From: Sminthopsis crassicaudata
Lineage: Eukaryota
NCBI RefSeq assembly: GCF_048593235.1
Contig: NC_133617.1
Location: 488,726,958 to 488,790,957 of the forward strand
Direction of reading: 5' to 3'
Length of the DNA stretch: 64,000 bases
Below, piece after piece: positions 6,841 through 62,390 of the stretch (positions are counted from its first letter, which is position 1; each line of letters starts with the position of its first letter). Made by a program: the position numbers and the translations under genes. The notes under the pieces are model-generated. The model did not search any database and had not been told where the DNA came from. It worked only from the letters and a program-made list of their open reading frames with translations.

Positions 6841-9779
6841 TGTTATTTATAATTCAGCTTTGTAAACTCCAAAAATTTTATAAATATCTCATCTAAACCT
6901 TTATCCAAATCATTGATTAAAAAAAAAAAAAAAAAACCAATAGTACAAGCTGAATAAAGCAGAAATTTCTGAAACATTGGACCAAAATCTTCCTTTTTAG
7001 TTATAAGTTCCCATTAATGATTAATTTTAATCCATTTAGCCAACTATAGTATACATTTTCATTTTATCTTTCCTTGTCAGCTTTAGTTCATTTTGAGCTT
7101 TAGTCTTCTTGATATTATTTCTATGGGACTATGCCATGCTTCTGTGTCTATCCTCTATTAAGTGCCCTTGCTTGGATCTTCTGTATGTCTTTTTAAAATC
7201 TAAGTTTGTTGATGGCTTCTTCTGCATACACATCACTCTTTAAACATTTCACCCATTTGTAAATTAGAATTGTTTCTCATTGTATCTTTTTTTATGTCAC
7301 GTCAAACATATTTCCATATGTTAAAAAAAAAAAAACCAACCCCACAAAGAAACTTTTTTTTTTTTTTTTAAAGTATGCTTCACTCTATTTTTAGAGTTCA
7401 TCAGTTTTCTCTCTGGAAGTAGATATCTTCATGGGTATTTTAGATCATAATCTTGATTTGAATAGTTCTTTGATTAGTCTTGATTAGTGTCTTTCACATT
7501 TTATCATCCTTATTACTGTTACTGTGTACAATCTTCTTCTGGTTTACTCACTTTGCCTGAGTTTTTCCAGGTTTTCTGAAACAATTCTGCTGGTCACATA
7601 TCACAATCATTGTGTCTTAATTTCATTTTGGAGATTTCCATACCACCCAGGTTCATTTGTAGAATTTTATTTTATAGGATACTGTTTGCTTTGGAATCTG
7701 TTCTCTCAAAATTATTTCCACCCAATAAACCAGTTCTTCCTTATTAGAGAAATCTAAGTCTAAAACTTTTAGACTTAGTTGTTTCCTCTGGCTTTTGAAG
7801 GAAATTATCATTAAAGTAGAATATGAAATTATTAATATTAACCAATCCACAGAGAGGTCCTTCAGGCATCTATATAAATAAAGCTTCATTATCATAATAT
7901 TCTCTCTATGCTCTCTGTGATATTTCCCAAACATATGCTTTCTTTCTTAAAAGGTGGTCTGTAGTAAATTCTAACAATATCCTATTTTTATTCATCTACC
8001 TCTATTGTTCTTAATCTAAATGATCTCTACAATGCTTTCTTTCCCTTCTGATTCATTAATTTCTCCATGTAAGTACTCTTACTGCCTTTCCCTTTTGCCT
8101 TGTGAATAAAATATAACCTTCCAGAGCCATGGTCTGGTAATGGCCTATCATTTGATATCAATATATAATACAATGCAATATACCTCTATACAAATAGTAG
8201 GCCATTTGATATTATTGGTATCAATGTTCATACTAAATTTGTCCCCTTGCATTATTTCTAATTCACTTACTATTTTATCTCTTTTACTATATTTGTGTCT
8301 TAGCTCCTGAGTTTTATTCTTGGATCTTTTCTTGAATTTTTTTCTTTGTCTTATAGTATACCTACATTCTATGGTACATAATAATGTGGATTTCAATAGG
8401 TAGTTTATTACTTCACCTTCATTTTCAGTTTAGAACCCTTATGATTAGATTTATAAGAGTTCATGCAAATGTGTTATTAGATTTGCTTCAACAGAGCAGT
8501 TTGGTTGGGAGTCAGAGTGAAAACTTACACAGGATTCACTTAAGTTAAAACTTTATTTTATCAAAGCTAGTGTGACAAATAGCATGGGCAACTAATTGGC
8601 AATTAGGGTCAAAGGGGAACAAAGCTTTTATGCCAAAATTTTGGCTCTAAGGAACATGAGGAATACTTAGACTGCTAAAAACAGTATTTTTTTTTTTCAG
8701 ACAGTAACTTTGACATGAGATCTCTTAAAAACAGAGTTAAACAAAACAACAATTTGGTTGTCTGGGTTCAAGGAAGAGTTTACAAGACAAGTGTTCCTTT
8801 TTTGAGCCCAACAAATCTAAACATCCTTGTTTTAGTGATTTTAGTAAATGTTTATGTTAATAATTTTCATAAGCCAATCTAGGGCTTGGGGTTAGGGTCT
8901 AGCAGGACCCTATCATTACATCCCTGCTTAGGAAACTTTCCTTCTTAAATTTTAAGCAGACTTTAAACTGAATGTACCCAGAATTTGGGATCAGTGTTAG
9001 AAAGTGTTAGCCTATGAAATGGAATCTAATAATCAGCATTAAACAGAACCAGGGTTTAAGAATAATGGAAATTGTTTTGATCTGGGGAGTCAAGAACTTT
9101 TAATTCTAGTCACAATTCTGACAGGTAGCCCTGTCACCTTGGGCAAGCCACCTCTCTACTTAATGTTTCATTTGTCTCACTTGTAAAATGAAAGCTAGAT
9201 TAATTTTAGGTTACCTTCCAACTTTAATTCTGTATGCTGGCTTTATTGCCAGCTGACATTTTGTTCTGAATTAGCCAGCTGAAGAAACAACAATGTATTC
9301 TTTGTGCTTTTAAGTTTTAATGATTTAAAAAAAATTTTTTTACATAATTTCGTAGATTAATCTCCCTCCACTTCCAGAGAGCTCTTTCATAGAAATTCCA
9401 AAAAAGGGAGGGAAGTTGGAAAATTCAGCAAAATTAGCCAACACATCAACCTAGTCCAGGATTTCATGCAGTATGGAATACCCACTATCCCTCACCTCTG
9501 CAAAGAGGGGAGGTGCATTCTTATAGCTCTCCTTTAGGGCCTTTTGCAGAATAAAGTTGATTGTATCTTTTGCATTGTTGTATATGTGTTGACATCCTAA
9601 TTCTGCATACTTCACACCTCTTTCCAATTCTGTTGATCATTTCCTTGATTCCTGGAGATTTAATCTTAAACATATCTCTTCCCTGAGCTTATCTCCAACA
9701 GTTCTCAACTTCTGAAAAAAAAAAATGCTGGACACCAAGGAAGCGACTCTGGAAAAACCAAGCGGAGTATAGGTATCTT

Positions 9780-47957: not shown

Positions 47958-48767
47958 CGCAAAAAGTTATCAAAATGTGCATACCCTTTGACCCAGCAGT
48001 GCTACTACTGGGCTTATATCCCAAGGAAATACTAAAGAAGGAAAAGGGTATGCCATATAAAGAAGGGAAAGTATGTGCCAAAATGTTTGTAGCAGCCCTT
48101 TTTGTAGTGGCAAGAAACTGGAAAATGAATGGATGTCCATCAATTGGAGAATGGTTGGGTAAATTATGGTATATGAAGGTTATGGAATATTATTGGAATA
48201 TGGAATATTAAGAAATGACCAGCACGAGGAATACAGAGAGGCTTGGAGAGACTTACATCAACTGATGCTGAGTGAAACGAGCAGAACTAGGGGATCATTA
48301 TACACTTCAACAACAATACTGTATGAGGATGTATTCTGATGGAAGTGGATATCTTCAACATAGAGAAGAGCTAATCCAGTTCCAATTGATCAATGATGGA
48401 GAGAATCAGCTACACCCAGAGAAGGAACACTGGGAAATGAGTGTAAACTGTGAGCATTTTTTTTTTGTTGTTTTTCTTCCCAGATTATTTTTACCTTCCG
48501 AATACAATTCTTCCTTTGCAACAACAACAATAACAAAATTCGGTTCTGCACATATATATTGTATCTAGGATATACTATAAGATATTTAATGTGTATGAGA
48601 ATGCCTGTCATCTAGGGGAGGGAGTGGAGGGAAGAAGGGGGAAAATTCGGAACAGAAGGGAGTACAAGGGATAATGTTGTAAAAAAAAAAAAAAAAAAGT
48701 ACCTATGCATATGTACTGTCAAAAAATGTTATAATTATAAAAATTAATAAAAAATAAATTTTAAAAA
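47958..48767 (+). mobile_element. Young 5'-truncated L1
   Basis: ORF 47975-48211 (CIPFDPAVLLLGLYPKEILK...VAALFVVARNWKMNGCPSIGEW), 3' UTR and A-rich tail; 14-bp TSD aagaaagtaagggg at 47944-47957 and 48768-48781. Confidence 0.95.
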
Positions 48768-48777
48768 AAGAAAGTAA

Positions 48778-49095
48778 GGGGTGGCACAGTAGATAGAGCA
48801 CAAGCCTTGAATTCAGGAGGAGCCAAGTTCAAATCTGGTCTCAGACACTTAACACTTCCTAGCTGTGTGGCCCTGAGCAAGTCACTTAATCTCAATTGCC
48901 TCAGCAAAGAAAAAAAAAAAGAAAAGAAGAGAAAGGAAGGGGAGCGAGATGATACAGTGGATAGCACACCAGATAATTAGCACATGGGTCCTGGAGTCAG
49001 GAGGACCTAAATTCAAATCTGACCTCAGACACTTGACACTTAACATTTATAGCTTTGTGACCTTGGGAAGTCACAACTCCAAAAAACCCAAAAAA
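48778..49095 (+). mobile_element. Two tandem tRNA-derived SINEs (48778-48929 and an older copy at 48943-49095)
   Basis: Two successive A-box/B-box heads and bodies. Confidence 0.82.
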
Positions 49096-50415
49096 GAAAA
49101 TAATAAACACTGTACTCTTATTTCCTGAATAATGGTTAGTAGAATGGTAAGATATTGATAGATTGCTAAGGGCCCTGAATGCCAGGCTGTAAAGATTTAC
49201 ATTTTATTTTATAAGCAATGATCTCCATTGCTAAATTGTTTTTGAGCAAGGGATAAACAAGGCCAGATTTGTAATTAGAAATAATTTTGGGAAGCTTGTG
49301 AAAGATAGGTTAAAGAAATGAGAAGTTAGGAAGCTCTCACTATACTTCCAACACAAAAGTACCAGGGCTTGACCCTAAAGACATTGGAATGAGAATAGAG
49401 TAAAGTGGATTAATGGGAAAGATATTATAAAGGAAAGAATGAAAAGCCTTTATGACTGATTAACTTATAAGAGTTCAATTTAATTTAATAATCATTTATC
49501 AAGCAATTATTTACAGGATAATATTCTAGTTGTTAAAAATATAAAGGCATAAATTCAATTATTCCTGGTTTAATGAAGCTTATATTTTTCTCAGGGAAAG
49601 GGAAATATGCAACATGTACATACAAGTATAAGGAACATTGAGAACAAAGACCCCCTAATAACTTGGTCAACTCTTTTGCTCTATGTATCCTCACTGATTG
49701 CTTATAAGGGTATAAGCCAGCAATCCTGATCCAGATGTTTCCAATCTTGGTTGCTACTTCATGAGTTGGGGGGTATGTGAGTACCTGAGTTGATAGCTGA
49801 TTCAATGATGGTTGTCCAACAGAGGATTCCTGTGTGAATGGAATCAACAAGATTGTTCGGACCATGAAGGCACTAGGTAGAGGTGCCTGAGTGGCCAGCA
49901 GATTTGGGCCTCAGACAATGAGCTGAGGCAAAGTCCAGCAGCCTCACAAAATACCTTTACCTTTTACAGAAATTAAGATGATGAATCATTGTTTTACCCC
50001 CCAAATATTTGTTAATGTATGCTCAAAGGTCTTTTGTTTTATGCTTTTCTCCATTGGTAGAAAAAATAAATTGCAGTACTGTACCAGATATTTGTATATT
50101 GAACAACTTTATGAGAAAGGATCCTTTTAATCTACTTGTGGGAAGATGCTAGATGCTAGATACATACCATACTTAAGCTTTATTTAGAAATGTCCCCTGG
50201 AACTCTTAAGTGGGGAGCAATGAGAGAATGAAAGAAAAACCTGACTCTTCTCTTTAGGGTCAAACTGCTTCTAGAATGAATGACGCCCCTATGTAAATAC
50301 AGAACAAGAACCTCTTTTCTGGGAGGAGCCACAAATACATACAAAAACATGTAAGAATATCCACATATAAATCCAGATAGGTGGCAAGGGAAAGCAGATA
50401 AGAATGTTAGACTCG

Positions 50416-50540
50416 GAACAGCTAGGTGGCACAGTGGTTAGAGCACCAGCCCTGAAGTGAGAAGGATCTGAGTTCAAATTTGACCCCAGGCACCTAACAC
50501 TTCCTAGCTGTGTGACCCTGGGCAAGTCACTTAAAAGGGA
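50416..50540 (+). mobile_element. WSINE1-like SINE, 3' truncated
   Basis: Head and body present; agaatgttag direct repeat at 50401-50410 and 50542-50551. Confidence 0.82.
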
Positions 50541-51099
50541 GAGAATGTTAGGCTTAAATCTTGGATTTGAGTTAATTATCTGGCATTTCCTAACTAGTTG
50601 ATCCTGGGTAAGTCGTTTTACTGCTGGATCCCTTAGGCAACTGTTCAAGACTTATCTATTAAGTCATGTTTGGGCATGATGCTTTGGTGATGTGGTAATT
50701 GGAGTTCAAACGCTCCTGAGCCCATGATCATATGATCGAATGTATGTGACAGCCTAAAGAACGCTTCCCACGGTTGCTTTAATAAACTTCCTTTTTTCTT
50801 TTCGCTGATAATGTCTGACACGGAAAAGGCAGAAAATTAATGATACCTTGAAGGGCCACGCTGTGTCAAATGATGCAGTCCATTTTTTAAATCCATAAGT
50901 TACACAAATAACGCATAACGGGAATAGAATGAAAATTTGTATGTCAAATCAAAACTGTAATACAAATGTTTGCATCGGATCTGCTTTTCTCTCATTTCTT
51001 CGCCTCAAGGAGAAGGATCGCCTCTCGCATCCTCCAATCTTCCCAAAGCATCCTTCAACACTGGGAATAAACACTATCCCCTACATGTGCTTTTAAGCT

Positions 51100-53350
51100 C
51101 CCATACAAATGTTCAAGTTTTTAATTAACCTCAAGATGGCGCCAAAACATCTCTAATGATGGATGGGGGGCCGGCCAGAGAGCGTGTTGGAGCGGGAGGA
51201 GAGAGGGGGACACCGCACGGTGTGCTCCGCTGTCCGGGGTCCAGCTGTGTCTGCAGACAGGGAAAAACCTTTTAGAAAGCAAACTTTTCAAACGCAAACG
51301 TCACTATTGCCATTCCTCGAAGTGTGTTTGATGCGAGCGCAGGGACGGAGGTCTCGCATCCCCCGGTACTTGCTCCTCCTCTCCCAGCCACAGGTGGCCT
51401 ATTTGGACAACTTTGCTCTGCTACAATGAAGAACTTTCTGTTGTAGGGAGCATTCGGGCTCAGAAACTCTTTGGCCCGGAACACACGAGCCGAGCCTGCC
51501 ATTCCCACAGCAGCACAGGGGAGCTGGGGGGTGGAGTTGACAGGACATTGAAAGAGGCAACCATCTGGAGCTTTTCTCATTTCTCCGGTTGTCTCAGAAG
51601 ATGGGGCGAGAGGGAAGAACTACTAAGTAGGACGCTTGTATCCTGTTTAAATGGTGACGAGATCTCGCGCTGTGCCTTTAAGAGACCCCTTTAAAGGAAA
51701 GCACATTGTCACAAGAACTATAAATCCCAGCATGTCCTGTGTGGGCCTTTTTCCTCTACACATTTGGTTGGGACCTCTATCCTCTGCCTCTATCCTCCGC
51801 CAATAGAAGCCGACTACATTTCCCAGCAAACTGTGGAATGTGACCGGTTTTCTATTTTATCCTGGTTGATTTCTCCATTTACGTCACGACCATGACACAA
51901 TCTTCCACTGTCCAACCTACCTTCTTTCTTGGGCTAAGGAAGGTACTACGCCTCCCAGCATACACAGCGCAGGTAAAGATTGCTTATGTCATTCATCTTC
52001 ACTACAATCCTTTTATAAGAAGTCTGACATGAGTAGCTATGGGCTGCAGACTACAACTCCCAAAAGCCCAGAAATGCTCATTTCATTTTTCCTTTTGCCG
52101 CCATCTTGCCTATAGTCCCCGCCCCATTCCCTTTTCCATTGTCTCCGCTGAAGAGAAAAGAGGTGGAGTCTGGAAAACTGCAACTCCCATAGTGCCTTGC
52201 GCTATCGGATGGCTTTAGATATTGGTGGTGAGATACAGAGCTAAAAAGCGGCAGCGAGGAGAATGTCAATCTTGGTCGCCATCTTGATTGTAGTCTTATC
52301 CCTTTTCCGGGTTCGTTGTCCTAAAGTATTGTTGCAAGCTAGCGGACTACTATTCCTAGCGCACCCCGCGCGACAGGCGAGCCAGTTAGTCACTCTACCG
52401 CCATCTTGCATGTAGTCCTTATCTGTCTTTACCTTCCCATTGTTCCTAACGGGATAACTGGAGATTAGGAAGTAGACGGACTAAGACTCCCGTGGGGTCC
52501 CACACGCGCAGAGGGTTGTAGAGGGAAAGAGGCTGAGAGCCTGAAGAGGAGGGCGGAGGAAGATGCCATCTTGTTTGTAGTCCCTGTTCTTGTTCCCGTT
52601 CTGTGTTCCCCAATGAAATTCTCAGGGCCTGTTGGAATACAACTCCCGTCGTCCTTGGTTTGCAGGGAGGTCCCCAGCCGGGCCCGTTGGCCGCCATCTT
52701 CTATGTAGTTTTTGCCTTCCCCGGCGTTCCATTGTTTTCCACGACTGCGCCCAGGGCTAGAAGACTACAATATCCGTCGTGCTCCGCGCGCCTCAATTCA
52801 GGAAGGTGGAGGTGTAGGGGGAAAGGGGGAGGGGTTGGCTTGGAAGAAGGAGGGAGGGAGGGAGGGAAGAAGGAGGAGAGAAGGAGGGGGGAGGAGAGGA
52901 GGAAGGAGGAAGGAGCTGAGGAGGGATGAGAGAGGCGGCTGGGGCCCGGGGCCGAAGCAGCGCGGGGCCAGGGGGCCGGGGGGGCTGAGACACCCCAACT
53001 GCCCCCTCCCCCTCCCCTCCCCCTCCCTCCTTCCCTCCCTTCCTTCTACTCGAGGGGGGGTTTTATTCAAATTTATTTAAATTTACTTCTTCATAGGGGC
53101 GATTGCGGGGGAGGGGGGTGGGGGGGCGCACGGGCCGGGGGGGGCGGGGCCAAAGTCGCTTCCTTCACCCCCCCCTCCCCACCCCCCTATCCTGCCACGG
53201 AGGGGGTCACCGGAGGGTGAAACGAGCTCGGGGGAGGGGGGAAGGTTAAGGTGACCCCCCCTCCCCTCCCCAGGAACCAGCGGTGGGAAGGGCTTGGACC
53301 CTGGGAAACGGGGAGGGGGGGGTGGGCCTGGACCTCAGGAGCAGCTGCAG
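51100..53350. promoter_or_regulatory. FBXL19: FBXL19 CpG-island promoter region, likely bidirectional
   Basis: CpG-rich; YY1 motif AAGATGGCG at about 51133 and five reverse copies; nine ACTAYRnnnCCC-type motifs; G-rich tracts at 53107-53150. Confidence 0.85.
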
Positions 53351-55330
53351 GGGGGCTAGGGTGGTGGGGAGGGAAAGGTGGGAGTTATTAGGCCAGAGCC
53401 ACTTCGGAGAGAAAAAGGGTAGGAGCCACTGAAGCAGGGAAGGGGGAGAGTTTGGATCCCTAAACCAAGAGACACTGGGAAAGGACTTGATCTCCCAATA
53501 GCCAAGGAACCCAAGAACCTGAGCCTATTGACTTGGGGGTGGGGCTGCAGAACTGAGTCCCCCCCAAAGCAAGGACTCTCCTGAAAACCTAGAACCAAAA
53601 CCAGTGCAAAGGCCTGTCCTCCAAGGGGATCCACACCTGAGCACCCCAATAGGTGCTTTCACCTATCTCTACCTACTGCTCCAGCCTCCAGGAGAGGCTG
53701 TGCAGCCTCAGGGGGCCGTGGACCCCGGAGTTCTGAGCACCCAGCGCCCTCCGCCCCCTGTCCCCCCTGCTGATGGCCGACGACCCACCGGGAGCTTCCG
53801 AGAAGGGAGAGATGGCTCCTGGGACACGTGTGAGGTGGGTTGATGCCTCTCTTCTTCCTTCTGTGCTCCCCACAAATCTAGATTTCTTTCTCATCTCCTT
53901 CGATTCATCTTTAGCTCATCTCCAGCTCTTTTCAGGCCCCTTTGATATCTCTGACTTTCCCATGGGGCTTTTCCTCATACCCAGAACTGAGCCCCTGGCT
54001 TCCTTCATCCCAGTTTCTGTTTCACTCCATAGTTCTGGTCATTTTACAATCCTGTGGGATTTATATACCCTTTGTGGGTCTTGGCTCACCCTTGGAAATC
54101 CTTAGAATTTTTCCTAATCTCATTTTCTTTTCTTTTATGGACTAGAGAGAGCTAGAGATCCCTAGAGAATTAAGAAAACTTAGAAGCCATGGGGAATTGG
54201 GAAGGGAGCTGGGGAATGCCATTGAATGAAATCTCAAGACTAGGAGGATGGGGGGTGGAAAACTCCCAGCAATCCAGAGATTTCCATATGGGATCTTTGA
54301 GAATCTGGTTACTATGGAAAGGGGAGCAGAAAACAATTTAAGGGATCTGGGACTCTGGAATAATGTTGATCAGATTGAATTCTGAAATTTTTGAGAATCT
54401 GGGTGAGTGCCTAAGTAAACTGAAGAACCTGAAGGTAGGAAGTCTAGGTTTTATGAAGGAGCCAAGTGTCTTGGAATCTGGGAAGAGGAGAGTTTACAGG
54501 ATCATGAGTGTCTCTTTCTAGTCAGGAGCATTCTAGGGAATTGGGAGTCCAAGACTAAAGAAAAAAGGATAATAGATGAAACCCAGAAGCCTTGTGGGCA
54601 AGGGATACAAGATCTGGGATATGTAGCAAAGATATAGGCTTTTTGAGAACTTGAAAAATTTTGAGGAGAAATCAGAAGTTGAGGTGGAATCCTAATCTTA
54701 AAGGCTTCTTGAGGGTTGGTTTGAGAAGAGATTGGTGGGCAACATCTAGTTTGTTTTATACGGTAGGGACGGGTGGTTGGGAAAGTTTGGAATTCACAGC
54801 CTGGGAACAGAGGGGACCTTGGAGGTATATCTGGGAATTTCAGGTTGGGGAGAGCCTGGGGAGAGCTGCATTTGGAGATCGAGGGGAAGAGTCAGGAGAT
54901 TTCTGAGGTAACCTCCATTGGGATGTCTTGGCCTTCCTGGGGAGTTTCAAGGTGGGAGTATCAGAAGAGACTGGGACATACTAAGGGAGGCACTGAGGAA
55001 GGTGAGGGGGTGGATCTGAGGTCCGGAGGTTGAGGGATCTATGGGTCCGTTGCAGAATTCTGAGGAGTAGAGGGAGATGGGGTGTGGACTGAATGGGGTG
55101 GCCTTTGGCCTCCAGGAGGGAGGGAGGGCAGAGGGAGGATCTGATTGAAAGACAGCCTTGGGAAAAGTTTAGGACTTCTAGATTCCATTATATCTTCTGG
55201 AGAAGAGAAGAGAAAAGAGCCGGATAGAGGTTATTATAGAGGCAATGTAGAGAATAAAGAAAAGAGAACTGGGCTGATTTTTCTTGATAATTTTCTTCCC
55301 ATACAGCCCTCGGCGTTGCTGACGCCCCCA

Positions 55331-58300
55331 ATGTCGTCCAGCGGCCGGGGGCCGGGGGCCGGAGCGCGCAGACGCCGAACCCGCTGCCGGCGCTGCCGGG
55401 CCTGTGTACGGACCGAGTGCGGGGACTGCCACTTCTGCCGGGACATGAAGAAATTCGGGGGTCCCGGGCGAATGAAGCAATCCTGTCTGCTCCGACAGTG
55501 TACTGCTGTGAGTCTTCCTTTTTTCCATTCCTCAGTCCATCAGTTGATTTGCTTGGGCCTATCAGCCTACTAGGCCATTTCTAGGCCTCTGGTCCTCTCA
55601 TAAGGGTTATGCTCTTACTGCACTCAAATAAGCTGCATTTAGGAGCTGGTGTCACCTGGCAGAATATACCTTTCCCATGACTGACTCAAGAGAAAGCCTC
55701 AGTTTTTTTTTTTGGGTGTTTGCTCTGCAGGGTAGACAATGTATTTCTGATTTACTTAACCACTTCGAACACTGGTCCAGAGCTTACAGTGGGAAATAGT
55801 CTTTGTCCCCAAAATGGCTTGATCCAGAACCAGCTGTTAGGAGCTCCCAATCCAACATCTTTCTCTCCCCTCTTTTTTTTCCTCCCCCTACCCCAAAAAG
55901 ACTGGTGGGGAAGTGTTATATGTCTTCCCAGTCTTCCCAGTGACTGATGGCCAGATGCTGGCTCTTTGACTTTTACAACTGTCTTCTACTCTTGTTGCTT
56001 CTTTTCCTTCTTGGTTCCCCTTCTCTTTTTTGTTTATCTCTGCCCTTCGGTTTCTTATTGCCTAATTCCTCCTGTCTCCCTTTTCCCTACCCTTTCTCCA
56101 GATTCTACCTTTAAGCCGGCTGGATCTCTTGTTTGACTTCTCTCCCCACCCCTCAAAAGCTGTTTTATCTCCTTGCTGGGACATCTATCCTGGAGATGGT
56201 TTGGGAGTTCCTCTTCTTTTTGCCTTATTGAGTCTGTCTGGCAAATCCCAACACCTACAGACTCTCAGTTGTGGCTGCTTTCCTCCCCAAAGTCACTCTG
56301 TTATATTCCCATGGCCTCCTGCTCTTCTCAGATCCTCTGTATTAACCAGGGACTGTCTTGTCCAGAAACCTTTGGGTCCCTCTATTAACCTCAGCTGCTA
56401 ACTCTTCATTCACTGGACCGACCACAATTTATTTTGTGCTTCAATTCACTTCAGCAAACATTTACTAATTGATTATTATGTGCTGGAAAGATGTCTTTCT
56501 CTATACCTCAGAGTCGTTCATAATTGTTTGATTAGCCACTAGTTCTTTCTTTTCCTGTGCCCAGTGAGGGAGTCCTGACTTTCCTTTTTTTTTTTTTTTT
56601 TTTTTCCCCCTGCAGCCCGTGCTACCCCACACAGCTGTGTGTTTGCTGTGTGGAGAGGCTGGAAAGGAGGATACAGTGGAGGGAGAAGAGGAAAAATTTG
56701 CTCTGAGCCTCATGGAGTGTACAATCTGCAATGAGATCGTCCACCCAGGCTGTCTCAAGGTAAGGTTTGGGAACTGGGCTGGGGGGGTGAGATTGCTTGG
56801 ACCAGAGCAGAAAAAGCTACAAAATGCTTAATGCTGGAAGGGAAGGACTAGGAAAGAAGGTATGAGAAGAGGCTGGGAGACAGAGCTGAAGGCCAGCTGA
56901 AGGAGAGTATAGAATAGGACATGAGAAAGATACTTGGGGCAGAATGTAACAAAGGGGTATTAGCTTCTAGGTAAGAATAGGATACACACAACTCCCTCTT
57001 CCCTTTTTGTTTCTACTAGATGGGAAAGGCCGAGGGTGTCATCAACACTGAGATCCCAAATTGTTGGGAGTGTCCTCGATGCACCCAGGAAGGCAGGACC
57101 AGCAAGGTAGGGTGGAGATCTGAGAGCCAGAGGTGGGAGTGGGGTGGGGTGGGGTGGAATAAAGAGTGACCTGGCTTCTTCTGTATATCAGCTGGATTAG
57201 AGGTTGGAACTCTGGGAGGGAAGAATTTGGAAGAAATGAGGGTAGAGGATGGATCTTCACCTCTTCTTTCCCTAGGATTCTGGGGAGGGGCCTGGACGAA
57301 GAAGAGCTGACAATGGGGAGGAGGGGCCAGGGCTGGGAAGTGGCTGGAAGCTAACTGAGGAGCTACCACCACCCCTCCCCCGACGAAAAGGCCCCTTGCC
57401 TCCAGGGACTCCCTCAGAGGATGGTCCTGGACCTCACAAGAGGAAAGAGAAAGAGGTGGGGAATGAACCCCCCACACCTAGGAAGAAGGTAAAGGCTGGA
57501 GGGAGGGGGGAGATCACGCCCTCTGAGGGCCAGGTAGAAGGGATTCTGGAGGATGTAGTTTTGATGACAAAAAAAAGGGATGAAGGATTGGGAGTCAGCA
57601 CTTTGTGGGCTTCCTGTGGGATTTCTGGGAGATGTAGTTCTGGAGCTAGAATGTTGTTTAAGGGATGGGTGGGGAATTGGGGGAGGGTGGAGCATGCTCA
57701 GTATGGTTTGTAGGAGTCTGGGAGGTATAGGTAAAGGAGGGGGTGGTAGGGGAACTCCAGGGAGTAGGAGAGTAATTTAGACAGAGTTGGAGAGAAGGAG
57801 AGAGCATGCTCAAGTTGGCTCCTAGGGAGGAGGAAAAAGGAGGGGCTGGAGAGGGCCTGAGTAGGAAGAAAGAAGAGCAGGAGCATGCTCAGTGGAAAGG
57901 AGACGGTATGATTGAAAGGTGAGCATGCTCAGAGTCTTGTCTGGGATGGGGACTTCTGGGATTTGTAGTCCAAGGTAGAGGCAGAAACTTGAGTTTTACA
58001 GAGGGTTAAGGGCCTAACAGAGTTTCTTTACTTTCTACACTCTCCACCATCCCACCCACCCAAACAGATAAAAGGAGGAAGAGAGAAGCACCTGAAGAAG
58101 GTGAGTGCAGATGGATGACTGCCTGTTCCCCTTGAGGCCTCATCAGATTGGAACTGGGTGTCCTATTCTGCCTCACCTTAGTCCTCAAGGTGTTCTGGAT
58201 AAGAGCCAAAATGTTATAGCCTTCTACCTTGGGGCAAGATCTTAAGATCTAAGAGTTTGAGTGGGAGGGAAATCATGGCTTTCACCTACCATGGAAATCT

Positions 58301-59587: not shown

Positions 59588-59854
59588 GTGAGTGGTTCCT
59601 TGGCTAGCACATTACAGAAATTGGAGGGTCCTGGTTCCTAGCTATGGTTGCATGGCAACAAGTTTCCCTCCATTGAACCAGTTCATTTCACCTTCCTCTG
59701 TATTCTCCCTTTGATAACTTTGGATGGGGTGAAGGGTCTGTATAAATGGTTTTTACCTGTGTGTAAGTCAACGAGCATTTCTTAAGGTCCTGCTTTGTGT
59801 CAGACACTGTGCTAAGCAATGGGTATTCAGAGAACAGCTTAAGATGGACCCTGC

Positions 59855-60000
59855 ATGGGGCAGTTAGGTGGCGCAGTGGATAGAGCACCAGTCTTGAATT
59901 CAGGAGGACCCCAGTTCAAATCTGGTCTCAGACACTTAACACTTCCTAGCTGTGTGACCCTAGGCAAGTCACTTAACCCCAGCCTCAGAAAAAAAAAAAA
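59855..60000 (+). mobile_element. Young WSINE1-like SINE
   Basis: Full length; perfect 14-bp TSD aagatggaccctgc at 59841-59854 and 60001-60014. Confidence 0.93.
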
Positions 60001-60039
60001 AAGATGGACCCTGCTTTTAAGAATAGGAGATAAAACATA

Positions 60040-62390
60040 CAGCTCTGTTAACAAATGTTATATAGACAGAATAAATTGGAGATAATTGACAGAGGGGAGG
60101 GACAGTAAAGGGGTAAGAATTGGGGACTTGAGCTGAGACTTGAAGAAAGAGAAACAAAGAAGAGCAGATGAGAAAATAGATATCCAAACAAGGGGGAAAA
60201 GTAAATGAAAATGCCCAGTCAGGAGATAGAATACAACAAGCAACACTGGATCACAGAGTAGATGAGGTATTGGGGAGATGGTATTAAGTATAAAAATACT
60301 GGAAAGAAAGGAAGGGGCTTTTAAAAAACAAAAGATTTTATTTGACTTTGAAGGTATCAGGGAGACACTGATATAATTAGACCTATGCTTTAGAAAGATC
60401 AGCTTAACAGCTGGTGTGGGGAGATTTGAGGGAGACAGTCCCTCTACTAAGCTGCTGTCAGAAGCAGGGAGATGCTTCCCATCTTGCCTTCAAGTGTTAG
60501 ACAAAGAAAAGGGGCAAGAGATATATAAGCAGAATTCTCCCTAAAGACAACTATATTTATCTTTTAAAATTCACAACTGAGGGACAGTCTCTACTATTAA
60601 CAGAGAGATATGGCTAAGTTGTAACTAATTCATTGAGTTGAATGAGGAGCAATAAACATCAAGTTTATCAACAAAATTTATCAACATTTAACACATAGAT
60701 ATTAACTGCTAGAGGTATGAAGATTTTAAAATGACAGTCCCTGATCACAAGGAGCTTGTCTTCTTCTGGAAGAATCAGGACAAGGTTGATGATATTTACG
60801 TGGGGAAACTGGTATAATTCAGGGTAGGAAGTGTGAATTGGAACACAGGTGAAAGAGCTTGGCATTCTAGGAGAGAAAATGAGTTTTCTATGATCCTTCC
60901 CCCAACTAAAAATCTAAGGAAAGGTAACATCTGAGCTACATTTTGAAGATAATAATGAAAGACTTGCTTGAATGAAAGTGAAAAATGGTAAGTTCAAGGA
61001 ACTCACTTCCAGTTTGAGTCATAGAACATATAAGGGAGGTAATTTGAAATTAATCTGGAAAGATAGTTGAGATCCAGATTACATATGACCCTAAATACCA
61101 AGATAAGGAGTCTGTAGTTTATCCTAAAGGCAATAAACCAAAAAACAGCATCATCAGATCTCTGTTTTGAGGATATTTATTTTGGCAACTGTGTAGAGGA
61201 TGGATTGAATTATTTATATTCCTGAAACAGGAATTAAGAGCTATTACAGTAGTCCAGTCAAAAGGTGTTAAGAGCCTGAACTGGGATCATATGTGAGTGG
61301 AGAGATAAGGAGATGTCTGTGAAGGATGTAATGGAGGTAAAAACAGCAAAACTTGGCATCTGAATGTGTGTGGGAGAAGAGGCAGAAGGAAAAAATCTAA
61401 GATAATTCAAACCTGAGTGACTTGGGAGATGGTAAAGCTATCAACAGAAAAAAAGAAGTTGGTATTAGGGGTGTCAGGGACATAATTTCTCAGATAAGTT
61501 AAATTTGAGGAATCTATAGGACAAATATATCAAATATGAGGCCAGGCTGCCACATTTTGGCTTGCAATATTCCTGGGCTCAGCTGAAACCATATGAAAAT
61601 ATAATTAGAAAATATTTAACAAAGCAAATAAAAATGTAAAAAATAAATAAAATTTTTAAAAAACCAAATTTAAAAAAAATGAAGAAGATGATGTTAACAT
61701 GTGGTTTTCTAAGTCAGTATATGGCTTATAGAGGGGCCCTTCGAGTTTAGTGGCCCCCATTTCTGTTTTGAGTGTAATATCACTGCTTTAGAACATCCAA
61801 GAACAGATGACCAGTAGGTCTTTGGAAATGTGAGGAGTGAAGTTTGGGGGAAGAGATTAGGAATTTATGTGTAGATTTGAGAGTCATCAGTGACACTTGA
61901 ACTCATGACAGCAGGTAAGATTATCAAAGAATAATATATATAGAGAGAGAACATAAGAACTAGGACAGAACCTTGAGGGAACACTCATATTTAGGGGACA
62001 GGAGATAGTTGTAAATAAGGAAAGGAGACTGAAGAGCAGTTAGATAGATAGGATGAAAGCCTGAAAAAAGCTGTATTATGAAATCAAGGAAGGACTGGTC
62101 AGCAGTATTGATGTAAAAAAAAATCAAGGAGAATGAAAAGTCCACTGGCTTTAACTAAAAATCAAAAAGCTGTTAGTGAACTTTGGGAAGAGTAATTTCA
62201 GTAGAGTGGTGGAATCACAATCCATATTACAAAGACTTGGTGCAGAACTAGAGGCAAGGAATGTACACTACTCTTAAAGAGTTGAGCAATGAGGTCATGG
62301 CAGGGTCAAAGAATAGTTTTTTAAGATAGTCAATAAACATTTATTATGTACCTACTATGTATCAGGCACTGTGCTAAGCACTGCTAGGGG
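60040..62390 (-). mobile_element. Fragmented ancient L2 LINE remnants in an FBXL19 intron
   Basis: Purine-rich antisense-L2 composition; reverse L2 3' motif taaacatttattatgtacctactatgtatcaggcactgtgctaagc at about 62335-62380. Boundaries approximate. Confidence 0.55.

Follow-up and report, generated by a model that had tools for sequence, protein, structure and literature searches.

What is the repeated, motif-dense DNA that lies upstream of FBXL19 in the dunnart Sminthopsis crassicaudata? The M4/SBS2 element and the YY1 motif are among the most conserved promoter words of mammals, but they have been studied as single sites, and FBXL19 itself encodes a reader of unmethylated CpG islands. Here we report an analysis of a 64,000-nucleotide stretch (RefSeq assembly GCF_048593235.1, contig NC_133617.1, forward strand positions 488,726,958 to 488,790,957), referred to as the window and numbered from its first letter, in which both motifs recur many times ahead of this gene. 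An earlier note on the stretch had described nine co-oriented ZNF143/THAP11-type sites interleaved with five YY1 composites, explained as an old tandem multiplication of one promoter module, possibly a nucleosome-scale phased platform for initiation or looping at FBXL19 and an antisense RNA. In our judgement the DNA immediately upstream of the first FBXL19 exon is probably a tandem array of promoter modules that is very old and confined to this one locus, and it would serve as a multivalent platform for ZNF143, THAP11 and YY1.

Sequences and alignments

The dunnart locus (L001, 38 kb) has the same motifs as the window, all shifted by one constant offset. It was compared with four further marsupial loci, namely koala (L002), GCA_019393635.1 (L003, a third marsupial lineage, presumably Dromiciops), the dasyurid GCA_048593225.1 (L004) and Antechinus flavipes (L005, GCA_016432865.2), and with platypus (L006) and the lizard Zootoca vivipara (L007). 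Orthologous loci were reached via full-length FBXL19 proteins, with the search begun from the F-box exon. The alignments cover the stretch up to 52868 and from 52941, and the dunnart-koala conservation profile covers the whole of L001. The 25-nt SBS2 consensus was that of PMC3627581.

Motif content of the array

The 19-mer CGCCATCTTGnnTRTAGTC occurs on the plus strand at 52099, 52277 and 52399 without a mismatch, at 52564 with one and at 52692 with two; there is no further copy in the 64 kb, and the number of matches expected from 100 shuffles was 0. Its reverse complement, ACTAYR-N2-CAAGATGGCGG, is made up of an ACTAYR hexamer, two free bases and a YY1 core, and is called the composite below. 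The composites carry the AAnATGGCG(G) or CCATnTT core of YY1 sites. Measured against AAGATGGCGG, four of the five cores have at most one mismatch and the core at 52564 has two, both in its last three bases.

The second motif, ACTAYRnnnCCC, corresponds to the M4/SBS2 core (ACTAYRNNNCCCR) and is present in nine copies, all on the plus strand: exact at 51717, 51813, 51945 and 52050, with one mismatch at 52177, 52480, 52636 and 52764, and with two at 52346. In the whole window there are 25 plus-strand matches with at most one mismatch, nine of which fall within one 1,060-bp span (Poisson P ~7e-10); the match at 52109, a chance overlap, is counted among the nine. Matches to the full 25-nt SBS2 consensus, of which 0 were expected, were found at 52177 (one mismatch) and 52764 (two mismatches), and at both positions the motif adjoins the 18-nt ZNF143 core (TTCCCA..TGC..GCG). 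The remaining dunnart copies fit this core loosely, their platypus orthologs are nearer to the consensus, and the distal GCGC is present in several of the other sites.

Both sets of sites thus stand where the earlier note had placed them, at a density far above chance; with no composite expected in shuffles and the Poisson value given above, chance clustering was rejected.

Structure and periodicity of the units

From 52050 onwards SBS sites and composites alternate strictly, as had been described. When the array is cut at the SBS sites and the units (U1 to U9, Table 1) are aligned, a common plan emerges, consisting of an SBS2 site (ACTACA + TCCC.. + ..GCG), a spacer of 23-74 nt, a composite, a pyrimidine-rich tail and the next SBS site, which begins 69-81 nt after the composite start. 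The composite lies on the strand opposite to the SBS site, and the two ACTAYR hexamers of one module thus face each other. The tail noted earlier in three copies, TTCCATTGT or TTCCCATTGT (TTCC(C)ATTGT), was recovered in all three, always at +35 from the composite.

Two kinds of unit can be distinguished. The short units U4, U6 and U8 are mutually similar and carry CCATTGT, and the long units U5 and U7, also mutually similar, have a purine-rich insert ahead of the composite and a degenerate tail; the start of U9 is likewise of the long kind. Composites are spaced 178/122/165/128 bp apart and SBS sites, from 52050, 127/169/134/156/128 bp, which gives dimer sums of 290-300 bp. Because short units cluster with short and long with long in the similarity scores, the dimer period of about 290-300 bp is real.

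The copies are alike mainly in their motifs, with a between-copy identity of 0.83 in the composite, 0.26 in the upstream flank and 0.36 in the downstream tail. Tandem Repeats Finder reported no repeat across the array, since the spacers are at background identity and the units too diverged. After removal of the motif cores, weak residual similarity was found among U4-U8 (z 2-5) and none for U1-U3; U1 and U2 (51717 and 51813) share no spacer similarity with other units. A tandem repeat derived by duplication is indicated by the shared order, orientation and +35 tail, the residual similarity being weak.

Orthology and selection

All five composites are present one-to-one in every marsupial locus (L002-L005) and in platypus, with spacings of 181/122/168/129 in koala, 190/122/171/128 in L003 and 206/119/155/126 in platypus. 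A sixth, weaker composite in U3 is kept in the other marsupials and has decayed in the dunnart, where the copy has suffered a 1-nt insertion and substitutions; the decayed copy also aligns to a weaker site in L003, which fits a looser pattern. In the multiple alignment the SBS sites of U3 and U5-U9 pair with platypus sites, the U4 site is decayed there, and the U1 and U2 sites are confined to marsupials.

Conservation is concentrated in the motifs. Motif columns are 95% identical between dunnart and koala versus 88% for spacers (p=3e-4), and between dunnart and platypus 72% versus 49% (p=1e-11). The identity of the array to koala, 86-97%, compares with 72-82% in neighbouring non-coding DNA and equals or exceeds that of coding exons. 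Composites from five lineages, 23 copies in all, agree without exception in ACT, in ATGG and in two additional A's. They differ only at Y and R of ACTAYR (seen as ACTACA, ACTATA and ACTACG), at both spacer bases and at base three of AAnATGG; the M4 and YY1 motifs as published are degenerate at these positions. The core variants AATATGG and AAAATGG are inside the known YY1 range, and CCATnTT is likewise preserved in the variant CTCCATTTT of platypus and in those of the lizard and L003, GCCATATT and GCCATTTT.

As judged from these alignments, the array arose by duplication, and its motifs have been under purifying selection since before the monotreme/therian split. The proposal of an ancient tandem amplification, in which motifs were kept and spacers diverged, is therefore upheld by shared anatomy, copy-by-copy orthology and motif-biased conservation, and the comparison with orthologous FBXL19 promoters that had been suggested as a check found the motifs kept in marsupials and platypus.

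The lizard array

In the lizard, composites were found at positions 1405, 1532, 1649 and 1767 of L007, with a period of 117-127 bp; the lizard counterpart of the mammalian CXXC exon, as identified by alignment, lies about 8.2 kb further downstream. Each is preceded by a plus-strand SBS-like site (AACTAC..TCCCA), and the composites are followed by a fifth, decayed unit and then by a GGA-rich tract, as in mammals. The lizard thus has 4-5 units of ~120 bp in the mammalian order and orientation upstream of FBXL19, and only at this array do matches to a profile of the mammalian unit span both motifs.

The lizard units are all of the short kind; thus the long/short alternation either came later, in the mammalian lineage, or has disappeared from the lizard. 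Given the plain ~120-bp period of the lizard, the ~290-bp dimer looks secondary, the product of an insert in every other unit, rather than a nucleosome-sized design. Of the earlier claim of a 285-300 bp dimer, the period stands as real and the alternation as old, and the nucleosome-scale reading looks unlikely.

The lizard locus also contains a palindromic MITE-like repeat (L007 10540-10660, 17490-17610 and 41287-41350) with GGGACTACAACTCCCATCATCCC in both arms, an M4/SBS2-like word that has been spread by a mobile element without the YY1 part.

Promoter context

FBXL19 is encoded on the plus strand, with its CXXC exon near 55304-55555 and further exons up to 59588. The array has a CNTF-family gene on one side and FBXL19 on the other. 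The annotated start codon of FBXL19 isoform X1 (53773) follows 1-2 kb downstream, ~1 kb from the last SBS site, which places the array upstream of FBXL19, as had been supposed. The array core has a GC content of 0.51 and a CpG observed/expected ratio of 0.73 in the dunnart and of 0.75 and 0.92, respectively, in platypus, above the values that mark a CpG island by a gene start (GC >0.5, observed/expected >0.6), and the first coding exon follows 1 kb downstream. A conserved block is contiguous with the array; it runs from the last units, takes in a TATA-like element and reaches as far as the first coding exon. This element, TTTTATTCAAATTTATTTAAATT, forms an island inside GC-rich DNA ~270 bp downstream of the array and is a candidate core-promoter element of FBXL19.

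A coding role of the array was rejected, as there are stops in all six frames and the indels are not multiples of three; ten open reading frames in and around it had no exact match in the protein collection. A scan for bacterial-type promoters and terminators, irrelevant here, found nothing.

Proposed function

SBS2 is bound by ZNF143 and THAP11 (PMC3627581), and the co-activator HCFC1 is found together with these two factors and with YY1 at CpG-island promoters that are active (PMC3668359). Against this background the array would be a multivalent docking platform on which ZNF143, THAP11 and YY1, linked to HCFC1, are loaded many times over. Such a platform would hold the CpG-rich FBXL19 promoter open and drive initiation, possibly in both directions. 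The SBS sites point towards FBXL19. The YY1 cores point upstream, away from the gene, so several antisense start sites are plausible, and these cores may set them; the YY1 motif is known to be enriched just downstream of start sites (10.1101/2024.05.13.594008). As a matter of speculation, the facing ACTAYR hexamer pair in each unit might be bridged by a dimeric reader. THAP proteins dimerise, and THAP1 co-occupies promoters with YY1 and HCF-1 (PMC13631171).

A more specific version is tentative, and we would rather bet against it than for it. It holds that ACTAYR-N2-CAAGATGGCGG is an undescribed bipartite element in which an ACTACA reader, THAP11 or a relative and not ZNF143, is coupled to YY1, and that with the facing SBS2, repeated five- to six-fold, it would form an amniote-old HCFC1 hub and a multi-start bidirectional promoter at FBXL19.

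Several points weigh against the platform and its great age. Factor docking and initiation at the array are predicted from sequence and the literature, and the reader of the ACTAYR half of the composite is a guess; our literature search found no description of an ACTAYR-N2-YY1 composite or of this array. The sites at 52050, 52346, 52480 and 52636 fit the 18-nt ZNF143 core only loosely. Marsupial spacers are also fairly conserved (87-88%), which points to some further constraint outside the named motifs. The species sample consists of marsupials, platypus and one lizard. Between the lizard and mammalian arrays BLAST gave no alignment, and the mammalian-unit profile matched the lizard array with modest E-values (1.6e-4 to 8e-3); their homology rests on architecture and position, and a pre-mammalian origin of the array, in the amniote ancestor, is therefore likely, not proven.

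Alternative explanations

Among the alternatives, the one that survives best, although we regard it as unlikely, is that the array is mainly a multi-start promoter and the first exon of an upstream antisense noncoding RNA, the counterpart of FBXL19-AS1. Each minus-strand composite would then be a YY1-positioned initiator, and the repeats might act in or tether the RNA, as YY1 sites do at Xist. A divergent antisense transcript is annotated at the human FBXL19 promoter, and this counts in its favour, as does the fact that all YY1 cores read sense on the minus strand, YY1 motifs being typically found just downstream of start sites (10.1101/2024.05.13.594008). The SBS sites, however, are all oriented the opposite way, the spacers, which would be the body of the RNA, are the least conserved part, and Rfam at gathering threshold matched no RNA family anywhere in the 64-kb window. 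A search of the literature on FBXL19-AS1 together with YY1 returned only unrelated cancer papers. An antisense RNA would in any case be compatible with the platform and not exclusive of it.

It is more doubtful still that the array is an architectural or insulating element, a looping anchor or boundary and not a promoter, that keeps CTF1/CTF2, cytokine genes of tissue-specific expression, apart from the FBXL19-ORAI3-SETD1A block, which is broadly expressed. Its place between a CNTF-family gene and FBXL19 would suit such a role, the co-orientation of its sites is typical of directional anchors, and there are reports that connect ZNF143 and YY1 with looping (PMC7154149, 10.1101/2023.09.27.559875). 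Depletion work, on the other hand, argues that ZNF143 acts independently of looping (PMC11687419), and no CTCF-type motif was seen, no search having been made for one. This role is possible, and it is less likely than the promoter reading because the array is continuous with the conserved CpG-rich promoter block, ~1 kb from the first coding exon.

That the array is a functionless relic of a mobile element or satellite, such as an L1-like array of 5' untranslated region monomers with YY1 sites, is highly improbable. In its favour, the L1 promoters of mouse are built of tandem monomers that contain YY1 sites (PMC11602158), MLT1J elements include SBS2 sites (PMC3627581) and the lizard MITE-like repeat carries ACTACAACTCCCA. 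Against it, the unit profile detected no further copy within the window, the composite is restricted to the array across the 38 kb of L001, no L1 or other mobile-element reading frames adjoin the array, and copies that correspond one-to-one over the monotreme/therian split, with motifs conserved above spacers, are unlike neutral relics; with no dispersed copies, no element frames and a single orthologous locus, a mobile-element origin was rejected.

Features of the locus

The features of the array and of the FBXL19 start are listed in Table 1.

Table 1. Positions in the window of the array elements, the candidate core promoter and the first coding exon of FBXL19
Feature	Position	Strand	Remarks
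SBS2/M4-like site U1 (ACTATAAATCCCAG...)	51717..51741	+	exact ACTAYRnnnCCC; kept in marsupials, not alignable in platypus
SBS2/M4-like site U2 (GACTACATTTCCCAG)	51813..51837	+	exact; conserved in marsupials only
SBS2/M4-like site U3	51945..51969	+	exact M4; platypus ortholog GACTACAACTCCCGG at L006 6584
Decayed sixth YY1/ACTAYR composite, unit U3	51990..52009	-	aligns to CACCATCTTCRCTAGAGTC in L002 (koala), L004 and L005
SBS2/M4-like site U4	52050..52074	+	exact M4; kept in marsupials, decayed in platypus
Composite 1, ACTAYR-N2-CAAGATGGCGG	52099..52117	-	orthologous in all five other mammalian loci
TTCCATTGT tail, short unit U4	52134..52142	+	+35; identical in platypus with ~60 nt around
SBS2 site U5, best full-length match	52177..52201	+	1 mismatch to 25-nt consensus; kept in platypus
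Purine-rich insert, long unit U5	52203..52276		variable; length differs between species
Composite 2	52277..52295	-	platypus copy CTCCATTTTG..TGTAGTC, inside the CCATnTT range of YY1 sites
SBS2-like site U6	52346..52370	+	2 mismatches to M4; platypus ortholog GACTACCGTTCCCG retains CCC
Composite 3	52399..52417	-	pattern match; orthologous in marsupials and platypus
TTCCCATTGT tail, short unit U6	52434..52443	+	+35; CCATTGTTCC retained in platypus
SBS2-like site U7	52480..52509	+	1 mismatch to M4; platypus ortholog GACTACGACTCCCGG
Purine-rich insert, long unit U7	52510..52563		TGTAGAGGGAAAGAGG recurs 296 bp further on at 52813
Composite 4	52564..52582	-	pattern match; orthologous in marsupials and platypus
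SBS2-like site U8	52636..52660	+	1 mismatch; ACAACTCCCGTCGTCC retained in platypus
Composite 5	52692..52710	-	pattern match; orthologous in marsupials and platypus
TTCCATTGT tail, short unit U8	52727..52735	+	+35 from composite
SBS2 site U9, last of the array	52764..52788	+	2 mismatches to 25-nt SBS2; identical in all marsupials; CCCGTCGTGCCCCGCGCGC in platypus
AT-rich TATA-like element (TTTTATTCAAATTTATTTAAATT), candidate core promoter	53061..53083	+	identical in platypus (L006 ~7750-7772)
First coding exon, annotated FBXL19 isoform X1 (MADDPPGASEKGEMAPGTRVR)	53773..53835	+	L001 gene start; tblastn of P0074, 100% identity

The array is followed by a GGA-rich tract (which includes 52840-52870), also present after the arrays of platypus and lizard, and ~100 bp later by a CCCT-rich tract (53002-53044). 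A lone YY1 core, CAAGATGGCGCC, lies ~600 bp to the left of the array on the plus strand (51132-51143), in the opposite orientation, and borders on a patch of moderate CpG richness (51150-51400).

The small second coding exon of FBXL19 isoform X1 (LGRAWGELHLEIEGKSQEISE, 54839-54919) is inside a region of local conservation. In the 200-bp bin 54773-54972 the identity is 94% to koala and L003 and, over 61% of the bin, 70% to platypus. Further downstream, a second cluster of ACTACAnnTCCCAG-like motifs was found on the minus strand at 57548-57969, in the FBXL19 intron between the exons 57276-57500 and 58047-58121, together with four palindromic GAGCATGCTC, each containing GCATG. The cluster is 94-99% identical among dunnart, koala and L003, above the level of coding exons; neither the platypus nor the lizard locus contains the palindrome, and the cluster core is not alignable to platypus. 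The cluster could serve as an intronic enhancer, as an alternative promoter or in the control of splicing. Copies of a SINE-like marsupial interspersed repeat, recognised by the recurring pseudo-peptide LSDLPRVTQLGSVKCLRPDLN in open reading frame translations of both strands, were located at 48761-49128, 50289-50648 and 59839-60085.

Comparison with known systems

One close counterpart of the array sites is the M4/SBS2 element (ACTACAnnTCCCAnnnTGCnnnGCG), associated with ZNF143, THAP11 and HCFC1, which has the same 25-nt motif and the same degeneracy (ACTAYR, CCCR). M4 sites are conserved across species (PMC5006282, PMC3627581), as is the array, which likewise lies in a CpG-rich promoter region. 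Most M4 genes, however, have one copy (PMC5006282), whereas the array has seven to nine co-oriented copies in steps of ~100-170 bp with YY1 interleaved; the largest tandem SBS case that we found in the literature comprises two sites, in the PCDH HS5-1 enhancer (10.1101/2023.09.27.559875).

The YY1 clusters of imprinting-control regions (Peg3-DMR, Xist/Tsix, Nespas) consist of co-oriented tandem YY1 sites in CpG-rich DNA with poorly conserved spacers (PMC2665242), as here. They are marked by at least three co-oriented YY1 sites within 500 bp by a gene start, and the array has four composites within 52099-52582. In those clusters motif number and spacing vary between mammals (PMC2665242), whereas at FBXL19 both are kept from platypus to marsupials, and such variation between species was not found. 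The array also differs in having two site types, an ACTAYR partner at a fixed two-base distance and a location upstream of FBXL19.

Mouse LINE-1 elements offer a third parallel, as the monomers of their 5' untranslated region are head-to-tail promoter units of 100-200 bp, each with an activating YY1 site (PMC11602158). LINE-1 monomers are young, multi-copy and mobile, whereas the FBXL19 array is single-locus, at least mammal-old and has no element attached; no adjoining frames were found, and no dispersed copies in the window or L001.

Overall, the array belongs with clustered transcription-factor-site promoter arrays, among which its two site types, fixed composite and copy-by-copy stability set it apart. 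It amounts to a natural experiment, in which a two-motif module was multiplied five times or more and each copy was kept for at least the age of mammals, with the intervening DNA at background, and it gives a ready phylogenetic footprint of the bases that matter. Why FBXL19 would need such multivalency is a testable question; if the array is also present in eutherians, existing data from chromatin immunoprecipitation sequencing (ChIP-seq), cap analysis of gene expression (CAGE) and Micro-C could test the idea directly. As regards the composite, promoters co-occupied by THAP1, YY1 and HCF-1 have been reported (PMC13631171), but we came across no account of an ACTAYR-N2-CAAGATGGCG composite with fixed spacing. 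The ACTACA submotif, as known, goes with the ZNF143 core, whereas the FBXL19 composite pairs ACTAYR with YY1, and a fixed ACTACA-YY1 pairing would extend the rule that ACTACA works only beside the ZNF143 core.

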